DNA of 63,917 bases, filler included, from Perkinsus chesapeaki ATCC PRA-425 (Eukaryota > Protista > Perkinsozoa), in the NCBI GenBank assembly GCA_013115145.1. It is 5 parts of 5 records of this genome, joined end to end, with 100 filler letters (N's around TTAATTAATTAA, not from the genome) between each part and the next. Parts side by side here need not be neighbours in the genome. Positions count along the whole stretch, not along the records: positions 6,390 to 32,641 come from JAAPAO010000512.1; 4 more parts are not named here. One strand, 5' to 3'. Made by a program: the position numbers and the translations under genes. The notes beneath the pieces are model-generated. The model was given only the letters and a program-made list of their open reading frames with translations. It had not been told where the DNA came from and made no database searches. Below, piece after piece: positions 9,505 to 32,641 of the stretch. The first letter of the stretch is position 1, and each line of letters opens with the position of its first letter.

Positions 9505-12500
9505 CTAACCGCTGCATGCGATGCAGGTATCTTCTTCTTCCTCCTGTACCTAAACGTAATACGCTTAACGCCCACATAGACCCAGCCACATCCACGTGAT
9601 TGACAGCAAACCCGAAACGCTATATTAGCGAATCAAGCAAGAATGCCGTAAGGAACGTGAAAACTAAGGTGAGAAAAATATGGGCGTCCCGCCGCCCGGA
9701 GCCGGCCGCCGTGTTACGTATTGGGGCTTCAGTGGGGACGACCTCGGCTTCAGCGGCGATTCGGCCGTGACCTTTTTGGCATCGAGGGTAAACTGGATGG
9801 CATCAGCAGCAGCTTTAGTACGTAAATAATATCTAATACAAAAATAACAAAGAACAATCTTCTTGCTACGCACTGTCCAGTTTTCAAGCCTAACTTCCAA
9901 CCATAAAAGTGCATAGAGGACAACTTGGCATTGGTGCAGTTTGTCATATGTATATTAAGTGATTGTGATTGGTCAATGTACCTGATTATTACACTACAAA
10001 GGATGTCATATTAAATAACCCACGGTCCTCGCCCAGCAGCCATGTCGAGAATCTTCTTTTGCTTGATCTCCCACACGGTCTTATATAGGTTCTAAATAGT
10101 CCGTATCCGAATGCGTCTGCCCACCGTGCTGCTGCTGCTGCCCACTCACCTGCACTTCATCTGGTATCTCCTCAATACCCTGTACCGATCCTTTCTGTCT
10201 GATAATCTTATCCTTAATCTCATCATTCCACAAATCAAGCTCCATAAGATCATGAACAAGATGCCTGTTAACCTGCACAAACTCGCCCGCCAATACCTGA
10301 GCAATCACAAGAGATATCTCAAACCCAACACGCCGACTCTGACCCACCCGACGGACGTAGATGTTTTGAGTGTACGGCTCGAAGGCCTCGTTATTCCCTA
10401 AAATCTGTGCTGTACCTTCAAGGATTCCCCAGTCTCCCCATCGACTGCTCTCGAATGTAAGCCTTACTGGCGGTTGGCATCGGAGCTACCAACAACGAGT
10501 TGCGCATACCGTGCTCCTTAATCTGTGCCTTCAGAGTCTCCCAATCCCAGCGGCCCGAATCAGGGGTGACATCTGACACGTTACCGAGTCCACAAACGAT
10601 GCCACTAGGCGACCACCTACCCCACATATCAAATTGCAGAATTCCCTCACTTGCCGGGCTGCCATTAAAGGTTTGATAAGGCCTGCCAAACCACCATAAC
10701 ACCACCACCACTCCACGACGACGACAAGTGTAGCAATAATCTCTACCCATGTTCCATAGCCAACTCCATACTGGCTTCGCAAGCTGCGTGATATATCGTC
10801 TCGAATATATCGTTATTCAATTTCAATGCCTCGGCCGACTCGTACGAATGACGCATGAGCAGGAAGGCATCAGCAAGCCCCTAAACGACACGACAAGCTG
10901 TCTCTACCTACCAAACCAACATGGATAGCCTCAACACCTGAACACCAATGCCGATCGGTCTATGGCGCATATTGCTATTCCTGGCTTCCACCACAGGATA
11001 ATAGTTACGGTCGATAACCTTTAAGGAGACAATCAACACTCAATATATTCAGCAATAACCAATACCTTGTTGAGGTTTCTGGTCACAACCTTGGTCACTT
11101 CATGGAGCCGTTTGAAATCATAAGTACCTAACGCCACAATGGGCACCTTACCCAAAAGACCTCTCCACATCTTACGTGTTTCCTTATCGACAAACATATT
11201 AAGAGCAACGGAGGCAAGATTACACACCGCCACTTCATCTGGGCTGGTATACCTACCAAGACACCATCAAATTACCTCATTACCTTCATTATTCAGCACT
11301 CACTCTACGATCTCACAGCACAAATTAGAGCATCGGATCGTTCCGAGGTTCTTCTGATTGCTCTTTCGATTAGCAGCGTCCTTATACCTACACTCCACCT
11401 ATACTTCAGCAGCCCACTGTCTATATAATGCCTACAGCATATAAGGTATGCCAGTCTCTTGCTGAGACTCTAGGATTTTGAACCAGAGAGATTGAGCCTT
11501 CACCGTCTTCCTTCCAACGCCTTCCTTTTCGTACTTTTCGTACAGAGCCTCGAACTCCTCACCGTACCTAATCGCCAACATAGAGCATTCAGGCCACACA
11601 ACAGCGAAGTAGCGGCGTACGTGTCTTGGAGCCCAGGCGCCTCATTAGGGCAGAAGAGTGTCCACTCACCATTAGCCATAACTCTCTTCATAAAAAGATC
11701 AGGAATCTGAAAAGCCAATATTGACACTGCGACAGATGTGCCCGGGCATGCATACCCAAAGACCGTAGAAGAGATCGCGAGCACGCTGCTCCTCTTTTCC
11801 GTGATTCTTCTTCAAGTCGAGGAACTCAAACACATCAGAGTGCCACGGTTCAAGGTACATGGCGAAAGATCCCTTTCGCTTTCCACCACCTGAATCGCCA
11901 GTCCAGAGTACACTACTAATAATAACTCCTACCTTGATCAACGTATCTCGCAGTGTCGTTAAAGACTCTGAGCATCGGCACAATCCCATTTGAGAAGCCA
12001 TTGGTGCCTCTAATATAACTCTCAGTTGCCCTAATACCACTAATGGCAACACCGATTCCTCCAGCAGTCTTCGATATCATAGCACCTCAACACACATTTC
12101 CTACCACATTTCCGTCAACTCACAAACCTTACATTGCTTCAACGTGTCATAAATCCCTTCTATAGAGTCGCCCTTCATAGTAAGCAAGAAGCAGCTCGAC
12201 ATCTGGGGATGAGGGGTGCCAGCGTTGAATAAAGTAGGAGTGGCGTGAGTGAACATTCTAGTAGACATCAAATTGTACCTTCACAAAGCATCCCTAAATA
12301 GCACCCATAACAGTCACCCCTACGTTTCGATGGCAGCATCGACATCTTCACCATGAATACCCACAGACACTCTCATGAGCATGTGCTGTGGTCTTTCCAG
12401 ACAAGCCTTGTTCGAAGGCCTCTTTAGAAGGTAAGATCTCTCCAATGTCTTAAAGCCGAAGTAATCATAATCGAAGTCCCTCTCGTAATCGATAGCCTGC

Positions 12501-20073: not shown

Positions 20074-23624
<3,551 letters not shown>

Positions 23625-23857
23625 GCCGGAGAAGAAGGACTAGGAAAGCCGATCAAAATGTGATAAACGTGGCGTGCGCGTTCCTCGCCACAATTCTGCT
23701 AAATTTTACATATTCGAAAAATGTAGCGCTCGCCCGAACTGCGCAACTCGATTGTCAAGTTGGAAATTTGAAGCCTTCCTTGACATGCAACCTCTCTGGT
23801 ACCTTGGATAGTCCCCAGACACTCGACACTTGAAGTAAAAGCGCACACGACGTCATA

Positions 23858-26800
23858 TTAGAGCAGCATAATGTTGCCATTGATGGACAGCATCCCTTCA
23901 GAGGAAATCTCGAGGTCATATTGTGCAGCGACAATCGGGCTGTCTTCACAGCAGTGCCTCATATCCACAAATAAACAGCTCTTTGGCTGATTGTGAACCT
24001 GGAGGGAGCAGCTCTTAGTCAAAATACGATTCTAGGGACGCCCACCAGGCGTTGGAGCATCTCTTCAACTCCCCTCAGTCCTATCGCATCATTATCTGCG
24101 ATATAGACGGTCCTCAGTGCGTCAGATTCCACCAGACGATCAACTAATTGAACGAAACCTGAATAAGAAGGATTACTAAATCTAAATGGTTGGGCCTGGC
24201 GGCTCCCACCGTAGTTGAACTGCAGGCTGGCTCTCGACATGCCAAGTATCGTCAGCTCTCTCAAATGGCATAGAGCGTCTGCGAATTCTACCAGACCTGA
24301 GCGGGCTTGTCAGGCGCATGTCTTTCGGACTAAGCTGCGTACTATCTTCCAAGACATTGGAGCCGATGAAGAGTTCCTCAAGTAGCAAGCACCTCCGTAA
24401 AGACTTGAACAACGCTTTACATCCGGTTGGTGTGAGAAAGTTATCCTCGAGGTTCAGTATGTGAAGATTCTTCAAATTATTCTGAGAGGAAGACTGCCCC
24501 GATATATGAGTGCTGTGGGGGTTCGAACCCACGCGGACCATGTCCAGTGGATCTTAAGTCCACCCCCTTAACCACTCGGGCAAACACTCACGTTAATAAC
24601 TAGTATTGTTTCATGTAGCATGTACTACACTCTTACATTGCCAATAGCATCAGCTAGTGAGGCTACTCCAACGTCTGAAAGACCAGCCTTCCAGAGGTTC
24701 AGTTCAATTATCGGGCATGTGCCGAGTCTTGAAGAAGAACACAACGCGATTATCGGCGTGTCCCCGATGTCCTGGCATGAGATACAGACATCATTGAACA
24801 TCAGCATCTGCCCTCACATTCCCACTCCATCGCAATCGAATACATTCTGATTGCCTATGGTGGAGGTTGGTCGACTCTTGTACTGCCGATTGTATCCACT
24901 GAGGGTTCGTACCTGTAACAGGCAACTTGTTACATAACATGGATCAGTTAAGGGTTGCCTTCTCGAGGTGGCACTTTATTCAAACTGATTGAATCATCAC
25001 TGCCGTTCAGATTGGGTATATAGCCTTCCTCATCTGGACTGTCGGGGTATGTCTCATCAGTCCACGTTTCCAATCCATCCCATCGCAACCGAGACACTAA
25101 TAGAATGCGACAAAGATACGCTCTTCAACGAGGTGTTCAACTTACCGTTGTCATAATGGGGCAGCATTTTTACGCTATTAGGGATATTGTACAGCATATC
25201 AACCACATCATGCTGGAAGTTGTCAGACCGAACTAAATCGTCTAACAGTCTTCCTAGTTCCCCTCCCCTCAAACGCTTTGCTCTTATACGAATGGTGCAT
25301 TGGCAAGCCTGTGCTGACCTAAAACAAGAGATCATCAATGAAAGCGGAATGTCCATATTCCTCTCACTTTCGCCGATCATTTCCCATGTCTTCTAAACCT
25401 TCTATCCAAACCTTCGCCGACATCACTTCCTCCTCCGGTAACTTAGCGAGTACTAAACGTCTAAGCCCTCCCACCTGAATAGAATGCTTCGCAGTGTCTT
25501 CAGCCTTCAGCCACGGACTACCACATTCAGGCCTAATGTGCTGTCAGTGGCCATCCCGTTGAAGTCAATGCCGTATAATACGAACCGGCACAAAGCCGAC
25601 GGAAGAGGAACTCTCGGTCGCATCAGCTGCATTTCCTTTGTCCAGCGATTAATATAGTATATATTTCCCCATACGGGGTCTTTGGCCTCTACCCAATCAG
25701 TTACTTTGTTGCCTTCGCATCGTTCAGATAGCCATGACCCTAACATTGAATAAGATGTGAGGCCAGTGACGATTTTTCTGCTGCCGACCTTACTCCAGTC
25801 AACGCTGGTAGCTGTGGTCGAGGTAGACCAGGTTGAACCGGTGCTACGGGTTGACGTGCTATCGGACGAAACCGAGGAAGCCGTGAAGGCGCTCCTAGGT
25901 ATGCGCTCGGGAGGCCCATCGTATGGTCTTCTAGTCTGCTTGCCTCGTAAAGGACTAGACGGCTCATCTGTACTCTTTACAACTGCACTCCCGGGTGACT
26001 GGACAAACTATGGACATTATATACTTCAAACGTAACTACTAGTTCCCTCGGCTCCTCGTGTCTGAGAAATAGGGGACGGCCTTGCGGTGTAAGAAGCATG
26101 GTCCATCCGGTCAACTCCTCTCCCACCGACGGTGCCTTCTAAAGGTGAACCATAGTACTTCTAGCAGGAGTGCGAGTTGAATGACCTTAGAGGGTTTAGT
26201 GCCAGGCAGAGATCTTGCTTGCCTTTGTGCAACAACTATTCGAACCCTCGTCCCGTCTATGTGTGTTACCCGTACTATGTCACCGTGGTTCAGCTTGCCA
26301 ACAACTGGGCTTAACAAACTGGACTCCTGACAATGAGTCTTCCAGGTTTCTACATTTGCTCCATGTACTGACCTTCCGCACCAACACCGAATCATGACAC
26401 TCATATGGTGGAATGTCGAGGGTTTTCTCTATGTCCCGGTTCCAGCCTATACTCCCAACAGGTGTTGTCACACGAAATAACGAGCGATTCTCATCTGACA
26501 GACTTGAAGCGTAAATCATTCAGCGACTTGGCGAGTTTACTTTCTGTGTTCGACGACCGTTCAAGGATATGTGGCAAGGGATCGAGGAAAGGATCTCCTG
26601 GTGCAAGAAGAATCCATCCGTGCTGGCAAGGCTCGTATCTGATCTTTAGCCCTTTATTTTCATTGAAAGGAAAAGGCAAACCTCAGAGGATCTACGACGG
26701 TTTCGAGAACGGTCTCGGTGATAACTACAGGGTGCATCACCTTGCGAAGCTGGGCATCTTCGAGTCTGCAAGGCTTCACATCATCTGGTGGGATGAGGAC

Positions 26801-29616: not shown

Positions 29617-30033
29617 CTAAGGCACTCGTTTGAGCTTGAGAGGAGGCACCCCCTTTGACCCACTGAAAACATAGTAATCAGCTTCAGCCCAGTCATCAGT
29701 GAAAATCACTATTGTCATTGCTATCACATAAGGTTCATCGAGGCGCTGCAAGAAGGGGGGCATCACCTTATCATAATCATTCTGATCCCATTTCAAGTCA
29801 TATCGACCCTTATGATATTTGTTCTTCGTCGCCTTGACATTAAAAGTATGCTTGTCCTTGGAGTCTTCCAGATATACGACCATAGTTTGAGGTTTACTCT
29901 CATCATAAGTAATTTCTACAGTAAGAGCCGAAGCCTTTGTAGTATAGACACCTTTGAACGTGTGTTTCTGGGCGTAGCCAGGGATAACGAGCACAAAGAT
30001 AACCAATAAGTGCAGCTGAAGTAGTTTTGCCAT
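29617..30033 (-). CDS. Small secreted protein, 138 aa, intronless
   Basis: Signal peptide MAKLLQLHLLVIFVLVIPGYA then a beta-rich-looking mature region; no family recognised. Confidence 0.75.
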   Translation of the reverse strand: MAKLLQLHLLVIFVLVIPGYAQKHTFKGVYTTKASALTVEITYDESKPQTMVVYLEDSKDKHTFNVKATKNKYHKGRYDLKWDQNDYDKVMPPFLQRLDEPYVIAMTIVIFTDDWAEADYYVFSGSKGVPPLKLKRVP

Positions 30034-30979
30034 AATATTGAGGTATAAGCCTACGATGATGGACAATCCTAGTAAGAGAAAATCCTGGGAATCCCAGGCT
30101 GGGATCGGAGTAGTACTTAGACGCGGAATAAATTAATTGACGACGGTCGGTGCTAGCTACCGAAGCGTTAAGAGTTTCGTTCCTGAAATGCTCCGCAAAT
30201 CAAACAGAGCGATAGATGTACGCAAAGCTTAATTTATAGCAATTACCATAATAGCTATAGCCAGCATAACATCGTGCGGCTCCACCTGAAGGGCTCAGGC
30301 CTTGAGATCCTATTTTCAAACTTACGACAACCAGGAGTACTTTTCCTGTTGTAGTTTCAGTGAAACTTTAACAGCCAAACTGTCTTACAGAAAGATTTCC
30401 CGTCTATCAAATGGTTTCCATGTTTTTCCGTACGCGTACCCCGCGTCTAAGCTGGCAGAGTTTGGCTCAAGAGTCATGAGTTTATCAGCATATCTTGCCC
30501 GTAGCGGGCTTTCATACGGATGACCGAGAGTCGTTATGACCACCCGTGCCCTGATTAAGTCTAGGCCACGTTTTTCTATTCGCTGCCTATCACATGGTAG
30601 TCACTTGGCATATACGTGTTTTGCGACGCTGCCTTCTCACCAACCTAAAAGTGGTTGGTCTATCACTTACATTGTGACAAAGACTTTATGATGAAGTATC
30701 CGTTTTAGTTATGCATAGACTGGTTAAATCCAAGCATCTCCTGCGTATCTAAGTTTATCCGGCAACTCGGAAGGCACCAACTGGTTTCCCGAGCAGGTTC
30801 GTCAAGCCAAGCGTTTGGCGCCGGTTGTTGGTATTAGCTCTGCGGCGGCTGCTGCTGACGTGGTGTACACCTAGGAGAGAATGAGCATCTAATCAAGACT
30901 GTCGAACGTCTACTAGTAATAGCCTATTACTAAGTCGAGCTTCACACTACGAATAATAGTATAAGGATAGTCATTTATT

Positions 30980-31255: not shown

Positions 31256-32641
31256 CCTGAATAAGAAGGATTACTAAATCTAAATGGCTGGGCCTGGCGG
31301 CTCCCACCGTAGTTGAACTGCAGGCTGGCTCTCGACATGCCAAGTATCGTCAGCTCTCTCACATGGCATAGAGCGTCTGCGAATTCTATCAGACCTGAGC
31401 GGGCTTGTCAGGCGCATGTCTTTCGGACTAAGCTGCGCACTATCTTCCAAGACATTGGAGCCGATGAAGAGTTCCTCAAGTAGCAAGCACCTCCGTAAAG
31501 ACTTGAACAACGCTTTACATCCGGTTGGTGTGAGAAAGTTATCCTCGAGGTTCAGTATGTGAAGATTCTTCAAATTATTCTGAGAGGAAGACTGCCCCGG
31601 TATACGAGTGCTGTGGGGGTTCGAACCCACGCGAACCATGTCCAGTGGATCTTAAGTCCACCCCCTTAACCACTCGGGCAAACACTCACGTTAATAACTA
31701 GTATTGTTTCATGTAGCATGTACTACACTCTTACATTGCCAATAGCTTTAGCTAGTGAGGCTACTCCAACTTCTGAAAGACCAGCCTTCCAGAGGTTCAG
31801 TTCAATTATCGGGCATGTGCCGAGTCTTGACAAAGAACACAACGCGATTATCGGCGTGTCCCCGATGTCCTGGCATGAGATACAGACATCATTGAACATC
31901 AACATCTGCCCTCACATTCCCACTCCATCGCAATCGAATACATTCTGATTGCCTATGGTGGAGGTTGGTCGACTCTTGTACTGCCGATTGTATCCACTGA
32001 GGGTTCGTACCTGTAACAGGCAACTTTTTACATAACATGGATCAGTTAAGGGTTGCCTTCTCGAGGTGGCACTTTATTCAAACTGATTGAATCATCACTG
32101 GCGTTCAGATTGGGTATATAGCCTTCCTCATCTGGACTGTCGGGGTATGTCTCATCAGTCCACGTTTCCAATCCATCCCATCGCAATCGAGACACTAATA
32201 GAATGCGACAAAGATACGCTCTTCAACGAGGTGTTCAACTTACCGTTGTCATAATGGGGCAGCATTTTCACGCTATTAGGGATATTGTACAGCATATCAA
32301 CCACATAATGCTGGAAGTTGTCAGACCGAACTAAATAGTCTAACAGTCTTCCTAGTTCCCCTCCCCTTAAACGCTTTGCTCTTATACGAATGGTGCATTG
32401 GCAAGCCTGTGCTGACCTAAAACATGAGATCATCAATAAAAGCGGAATGTCCATATTCCTCTCACTTTCGCCGATCATTTCCCATGTCTTCTAAACCTTC
32501 TATCCAAACCTTCGCCGACATCACTTCCTCCTCCGGTAACTTAGCGAGCACTAAACGTCTAAGCCCTCCCACCTGAATAGAATGCTTCGCAGTGTCTTCA
32601 GCCTTCAGCCACGGACTACCACATTCAGGCCTAATGTGCTG
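31256..32641 (-). pseudogene. Near-identical duplicate of LRR-gene segment 24158-25543; lacks the last exons, 5' part runs into the gap
   Basis: Constant offset 7098 at both ends, scattered substitutions only; identity stops at the AG|G of a splice acceptor. Confidence 0.75.
31605..31687 (-). tRNA. tRNA-Leu-TAA: Second copy of intronic tRNA-Leu(UAA), with G73 and a G.U in the variable arm
   Basis: Same cloverleaf as 24507-24589; differences: variable arm GTTC vs GTCC, discriminator G vs A. Confidence 0.75.

Follow-up and report, generated by a model that had tools for sequence, protein, structure and literature searches.

Transfer RNA (tRNA) genes nested in the introns of other genes are known from Caenorhabditis elegans, in which introns house 44% of the 609 tRNA genes, 56% of these in sense orientation (PMC4999229), and from Arabidopsis, in which about nine introns contain nested tRNA genes and are spliced normally (PMC6152437). 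A search of the literature found no description of tRNA nesting of this kind in perkinsids. Here we analyse a tRNA-Leu(UAA) gene which lies in sense orientation inside a predicted 155-nucleotide (nt) spliceosomal intron of a leucine-rich repeat (LRR) gene of Perkinsus chesapeaki ATCC PRA-425 (assembly GCA_013115145.1, record JAAPAO010000512.1), together with a second copy of the same arrangement on the same record; the window denotes the whole 63,917-nt stretch of DNA that was analysed, five joined parts with filler included. The locus resembles the nested genes of C. elegans and Arabidopsis in combining a nuclear tRNA, internal RNA polymerase III (Pol III) promoter boxes, a spliceosomal intron and the strand of the host, and in a tRNA-host pairing that is kept between related species. 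It differs in that its intron is very small, 54% of it being tRNA, and in that the window copies have an 8-nt T loop and no oligo-T tract for ~480 nt. Nesting as such is already known in other organisms and the locus reveals no new mechanism. Its counterpart in Perkinsus olseni is canonical, and we consider it probable (roughly 60%) that both window copies are impaired or decaying, tRNA function and expression here being predictions from sequence.

The intron, the sixth of seven modelled in the host gene (Table 1), opens at the donor GGCAAT/GTAAGA, with intron base 1 at 24636, and closes at the acceptor CCTCTCAG/AATAAT, with its final base at 24482, and is laid out as 46 nt, the 83-nt tRNA and 25 nt plus the AG acceptor context. 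Reading frame, repeat continuity and homology to P. olseni all point to 24636-24482 as an intron: the frame shifts by two across it, an in-frame stop lies three codons past the donor, RNI-like LRR units continue over the predicted junction (...LADAIGN/NNLKNLHILNLEDN...), and both gene copies yield 304 stop-free codons once all seven modelled introns are removed. Exons were searched singly, and a scripted spliced translation served for the frame check and the substitution count. A search of sequencing runs found the locus in DNA runs only, and two small runs presumed to be RNA (X6 and X7) gave no alignment to the stretch. The six other introns of the host gene measure 46-50 nt, one of them 76 nt under an alternative model. 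For this one, intron 4, a 46-nt GC-AG intron (G/GCAACC...TTACAG/GT) is probable and is preferred over the 76-nt GT-AG model because the flanking residues, VPPRE/GTNPQ, align with VPRL/GTNSE in the P. olseni protein P0005.

Two tRNA-Leu(taa) genes were called by ARAGORN, at 24506-24590(-) and 31604-31688(-), and Rfam RF00005 matched the minus strand at 24507-24589 (52.1 bits, E = 1.1e-08) and at 31605-31687 (50.7 bits), which we refer to as copies 1 and 2. Both programs recover a 7-bp acceptor stem, a D arm, a UAA anticodon arm (TAA at 24556-24554 in copy 1) and a long variable arm, and in the ARAGORN drawings the acceptor stem is wholly paired in both copies. Canonical relatives have exactly the same A and B boxes, TGCCCGAGTGG and GGTTCGAACCC, and a 35-nt core of the D and anticodon arms is identical in >120 environmental (metagenome) tRNA-Leu genes. 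The two copies differ at two of 83 sites: position 31634 in the variable stem, where a G-C pair becomes G-U in copy 2, and the discriminator, which is A73 in copy 1 but G (31605) in copy 2. A73 is the chief identity element for leucine, and A73G by itself makes human tRNA-Leu accept serine in vitro (PMC9976931).

Both copies share one further departure from the canonical cloverleaf. A run of five C at tRNA positions 69-73, lying such that the extra C sits 3' of the B box, gives each of them a T loop of 8 nt, UUCGAACC (ttcgaacc in the ARAGORN drawing), where the canonical form is a 5-bp arm with a 7-nt loop. We aligned contigs from two independent DNA studies (X1 and X4) over 22000-26200; 12 contigs of X1 and nine of X4, derived from other genomic copies, skip one base at 24517, and most other genomic copies of the tRNA carry four C, not five. 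Record 9 of X4, from an independent DNA run and study, crosses 24158-24547 gap-free, fifth C included, so that the fifth C is genuine at this locus and an assembly error as its origin is ruled out. The extra C is locus-specific and aberrant. Among 92 distinct environmental relatives the five-C run occurs in none, a perfect 5/7/5 T arm in 86 and A73 in 91. Canonical relatives score 57.4-58.1 bits, compared with the 52.1 and 50.7 of the window copies, a cost of ~5 bits for the defect.

The intron (24636-24482) contains no TTTT, and the first run of four T (T4) 3' of the tRNA lies at +483 (copy 1) or +504 (copy 2). Such a distance is rare among environmental relatives (first T4 >480 nt away in 2/74), and a T4 within 20 nt is found in 31/86. 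Loose ends of the DNA-run contigs give a view of other copies in the same genome: one canonical copy has a trailer, ATTTAAGG..., with no T4, another trailer reads TCAATAGTTTTG, and these copies share the acceptor strand and the discriminator A. A preliminary description of the locus, made from the sequence alone, had proposed the intron bounds and the 155-nt length, a sense tRNA-Leu(UAA) in a short intron that keeps the host frame, the tRNA as the reason for the added intron length, the lack of an oligo-T tract in the intron and the extra T-arm C in both copies. All five points held up: sequence, frame and the acceptor register in P. olseni agree on the bounds and counts, ARAGORN, Rfam and the stop-free spliced model on the nested tRNA, and the sister introns on the excess length; the distances to the first T4 bear out the missing oligo-T, and the ARAGORN drawing the extra C, which X4 record 9 confirms at copy 1.

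Protein relatives of the host gene were found in P. olseni only. When the last exon was searched exhaustively with HMMER, one real relative emerged, P0002, a partial hypothetical protein of that species; the top match, P0001 (1402 aa), was rejected as an artefact in which weak matches to a 70-residue repeat add up, and P0003 as a weak, repetitive match. Pfam scans of the single exons returned sub-threshold matches only (LRR_6 in exon 7, E = 0.0069; WW, E = 0.0045), and a word search with a mechanical open reading frame (ORF) at 24185-24541 found no match. The P. olseni material comprised contigs JABANM010027842.1 and JABANM010020284.1 and proteins KAF4710663.1 and KAF4723092.1. Contig L121 encodes P0002, L122 encodes its cluster-mate P0004, and L123 encodes P0005; all are partial proteins, P0005 being homologous to exons 1-5 and P0002 and P0004 to exons 7-8. 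Intron positions in L123 are as in the window gene, which supports the 46-nt GC-AG form of intron 4.

The same tRNA lies at the corresponding place in P. olseni. Contigs L121 and L122 start within it, the one at tRNA position 15 and the other at 43, on the same strand and upstream of the exon-7 homologue, and 3' of the tRNA each continues with intron (104 nt in L121, 90 nt in L122), CAG and the exon-7 homologue. The comparison covers the 3' part of the tRNA, the intron tail and exon 7 onward, the contigs breaking in the multicopy tRNA. Exon 7 has 56% protein identity to residues 3-45 of P0004, and its start falls in the identical register in gene calls that were made independently for P. olseni. 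The two species thus share the tRNA, its strand, the homologous LRR exon and the register of the exon start, whereas the elements of the tRNA and its tail differ: P. olseni has four C, a canonical 7-nt T loop, discriminator A, a GCGGG/CCCGC stem and a 90-104 nt tail with TTTT at +18 (L121) or at +7 and +19 (L122), the window copies five C, a GUGGG/CCCAC stem and a 25-nt tail with no T run. Between the window and L121 the tRNA is identical at 65/68 positions, two of the three substitutions being the compensatory pair in the T stem, whilst the adjacent exon 7 DNA is 64% identical. Between L121 and L122 the tRNA is identical at 40/40 positions, the intron tail is 79% and the exon 96.5% identical. 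Elsewhere in L121, positions 450-623 form an extra predicted intron of ~174 nt where the window gene has uninterrupted coding sequence (...GGSRQAQPFRFSNPSYSG...), a difference in intron presence between the P. olseni and window lineages as read from the sequences.

The second window copy of the tRNA belongs to a duplicated segment that takes in most of the host gene. Differences between the gene copies are equally frequent in exons (15/915) and introns (8/471), five of the exon differences being synonymous and ten non-synonymous, and the divergence of the tRNA (2/83) is no lower than that of its surroundings (23/1386). Below 31256 the host frame of copy 2 diverges and ends early, after ...SNPSYSG, with the last LRR lost. 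Over ~24158-26050 the DNA-run depth is two to four times that of a single copy, suggestive of some three copies of the LRR gene segment in the genome.

Over the tRNA body the picture is of another order. Summed contig depth in X1 and X4 reaches ~80-200x single copy there, a rough figure since contig depths were summed, and both the spike and the loose contig ends are limited to the tRNA body, with flanks that are unique in the genome. A spike so restricted implies many related tRNA genes in the genome, and it fits the hundreds of copies reported for some tRNA genes in P. marinus (PMC3706591). Variant tRNA families in X1 and X4 share the D and anticodon arms and differ in the acceptor, variable arm or T arm. 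Metagenome contigs with a related Leu(UAA) gene (L068, L019, L010 and L027) are dense tRNA clusters, with up to 15 tRNAs in 1.9 kb, and L027 has a U2 small nuclear RNA and a U3-like small nucleolar RNA (snoRNA) beside its tRNAs. A crude screen for environmental relatives lying in short introns gave 3/58, against 2-6 of 39-51 at shifted control positions, and thus no excess.

Taken together, we favour the following history. The tRNA would belong to a very large nuclear family whose members are dispersed; it lies sense-nested in an intron of a fast-evolving WW/LRR gene, and the nesting appears to be old. The ancestral state was probably an ordinary, autonomous Pol III tRNA gene in a conserved intron, since the intronic tRNA of P. 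olseni is canonical and has TTTT within the intron; that counterpart would run as a Pol III unit from its A and B boxes to its own oligo-T, independent of the host messenger RNA (mRNA). The window copies are derived, in their 8-nt T loop, in an intron tail that bears terminators in P. olseni but is shortened to 25 nt without one here, and in the G73 of copy 2. Insertion of the C into the T loop would have preceded duplication of the host gene, and copy 2 would have lost A73 later. Because the promoter boxes are intact, the Pol III machinery probably still binds both copies; usable tRNA-Leu output is most likely little or none, and the host intron would be spliced simply around the tRNA. Many canonical copies exist elsewhere, with which the window copies would be redundant, and we judge the latter to be impaired or decaying.

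Several points weigh against this history. An 8-nt T loop is not proven to be lethal, and extra C aside, the cloverleaf of copy 1 is flawless, with A73 and both promoter boxes (A and B) preserved. The missing terminator is a weak sign of inactivity, since only 31/86 relatives have a nearby T4. The upstream half of the P. olseni intron, that is exon 6, the donor and the 5' part of the tRNA, lies outside the recovered contigs, and the P. olseni genes may be paralogues and not orthologues. Conservation of the tRNA relative to P. olseni may also reflect selection on this very copy, and not only gene conversion within the family.

Some of these points also favour the strongest alternative, that the window tRNA is still functional, which we regard as doubtful but deserving of serious attention. 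Pol III would transcribe it from the intact boxes, read-through or weak, non-canonical stops would end the transcript, RNase Z would trim the trailer and the 8-nt loop would be tolerated. In yeast, Pol III read-through is common and RNase Z can rescue 3'-extended precursors (PMC4937561), about two thirds of the environmental relatives have no T4 inside 20 nt, the same-genome copy with the T4-free trailer ATTTAAGG... is canonical, and the tRNA is much better conserved than the flanking exon in the comparison with P. olseni. However, the 8-nt T loop is present in none of the 92 relatives and is absent from most genomic copies, tertiary contacts between the D loop and the T loop matter for leucylation (PMC9976931), copy 2 with its G73 would be mischarged if expressed, and between the two window copies the tRNA diverges no less than the sequence around it.

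It is improbable that, with the terminator-bearing tail lost, the tRNA came to be made from, or to act on, the RNA polymerase II (Pol II) transcript of its host and no longer as an independent Pol III unit. Such dependence on the host could take two forms: RNase P and RNase Z might free the tRNA from the pre-mRNA or lariat, or its fold might enable splicing of an intron three times the genomic norm. The first, in which the tRNA would be excised like an intronic snoRNA or like GUT15 of Arabidopsis, we consider quite unlikely when taken singly. It was the mechanism put forward in the preliminary description, and sense orientation and the ~480 nt without a terminator in both copies are in keeping with it; GUT15 is a precedent for a tRNA-like RNA of intronic, Pol II origin (PMC6152437), and for C. 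elegans the same suggestion has been made (PMC4999229). GUT15 and the mirtron- and snoRNA-like RNAs share with the window locus a sense, tRNA-shaped element in the intron of a Pol II transcript, but the GUT15 element cannot be transcribed by Pol III, whereas the A and B boxes are canonical here and the P. olseni counterpart has terminators besides. Host dependence is therefore not ancestral, judging by those TTTT runs, and the extra C and G73 point to relaxed constraint in a genome where canonical copies are plentiful. Release from the host transcript is thus an unneeded assumption as well as a less likely one, the P. olseni gene being canonical with its TTTT inside the intron.

The second form, a role in cis in splicing, is less likely again. 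In such a model the fold would loop out the 83 nt, leaving an effective intron of 72 nt, near the norm of 46-50 nt, or would recruit factors as nimtRNAs do. Intron sizes in the host gene are very uniform, both copies have a fully paired acceptor stem, and intronic tRNA-like elements can alter splicing efficiency (PMC7722341, PMC6152437). Canonical nested tRNAs, however, have no effect on splicing in Arabidopsis (PMC6152437), and the P. olseni intron, with its tail of 90-104 nt, is longer still, so that no tight limit on length is evident. Thermodynamic folding of the intron and of the tRNA, which is uninformative for a tRNA, recovered no cloverleaf and showed no significant stability; the intron fold does not favour the cloverleaf, and its stability does not exceed that of shuffled sequence (z = -1.3).

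We also compared the copies with tRNA pseudogenes and with tRNA-derived short interspersed elements (SINEs). They resemble these in a non-canonical cloverleaf (the extra C, and G73 in copy 2), in redundancy and in the lack of excess tRNA conservation between the two window copies. They differ from SINEs and retrocopies in having no encoded CCA, A-rich tail, tRNA-unrelated body or target-site duplication, the sequence after the discriminator being TATATCGG..., and an origin as a retrocopy or SINE was rejected. The preliminary description had offered, as a fallback, either a decaying tRNA or a tRNA-derived insert: the first part is the reading that fits best, in view of the rarity of the extra C and the loss of A73 in copy 2, whereas the second finds no CCA, A tail or repeated flank. 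Finally, that 24636-24482 is no intron at all, but a tRNA gene or assembly artefact inside a dead LRR pseudogene with a fortuitous GT and AG, is scarcely credible. In its favour, exon substitutions are as frequent as intron ones and mostly non-synonymous, copy 2 is truncated and the single-exon Pfam matches are sub-threshold. Against it, the 304 stop-free codons of both copies depend on taking out all seven introns, the P. olseni gene calls have matching intron positions and exon registers, and two independent DNA studies bear out the sequence.

Table 1 Features of the tRNA-bearing LRR gene and its second copy, in window positions
Feature	Position	Strand	Description	Basis
Host gene	24019..26007	minus	eight modelled exons: WW-like N-terminal exon (weak), then RNI-like LRRs; TGA stop codon at 24021-24019	reading frames; start codon provisional
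Intron	25475..25524	minus	50 nt	reading-frame model
Intron	25319..25367	minus	49 nt	reading-frame model
Intron	25097..25145	minus	49 nt	reading-frame model
Intron 4, more likely model	24913..24958	minus	46 nt, GC-AG	
Intron 4, alternative model	24899..24974	minus	76 nt, GT-AG	
Intron	24772..24817	minus	46 nt	reading-frame model
Exon 6	24637..24771	minus	45 codons, DIGDTP...ADAIGN, RNI-like LRR unit	reading frames
Intron 6	24482..24636	minus	155 nt, GTAAGA...CTCTCAG, tRNA-bearing (predicted)	frame, homology
tRNA-Leu(UAA) copy 1	24507..24589	minus	class II cloverleaf of 83 nt, discriminator A (24507) included	ARAGORN, Rfam RF00005
Five-C run	24517..24521	minus	tRNA positions 69-73; four C in canonical copies	ARAGORN drawing, contig comparison
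Exon 7	24343..24481	minus	NNLKNLHILNLEDN..., LRR unit	sub-threshold Pfam LRR_6, P. olseni homology
Intron	24297..24342	minus	46 nt	reading-frame model
First TTTT 3' of copy 1	24021..24024	minus	in final codons of host coding sequence	
Duplicated segment copy 1	24158..25543		pairs with 31256-32641; 98.3% identity, 23 differences	
Duplicated segment copy 2	31256..32641		cut at edge of piece	
tRNA-bearing intron, copy 2	31580..31734	minus	offset 7098 from copy 1	
tRNA-Leu(UAA) copy 2	31605..31687	minus	same extra C as copy 1	ARAGORN, Rfam RF00005

Other candidate genes are recognisable elsewhere in the window. About 400 nt 3' of the LRR gene, at ~22000-23624 (minus), lies a separate gene for an SNF1/AMPK-like protein kinase, with an ATG at 23624, a His-rich N-terminus and introns of ~50 nt. 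Fragments of reading frame of a kind typical for the large subunit of ribonucleotide reductase occur at ~10000-12100 (minus), and a small-protein ORF with a signal-peptide-like start, MAKLLQLHLLVIFVLVIPGYA..., at 29617-30066 (minus).

For annotation the locus carries a warning, in that tRNA finders will report both copies as normal Leu(UAA) genes despite the G73 in one of them. For the perkinsids, it provides a documented case of a tRNA gene in a very short intron. The pair formed by P. olseni, canonical and with a terminator, and the window, with its 8-nt T loop and no terminator, offers a before-and-after comparison of use in asking how nested Pol III genes decay or become dependent on their hosts. 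Should the improbable reading of host dependence prove true, the locus would catch in nature a nested tRNA gene as it moves from Pol III autonomy to reliance on its host.

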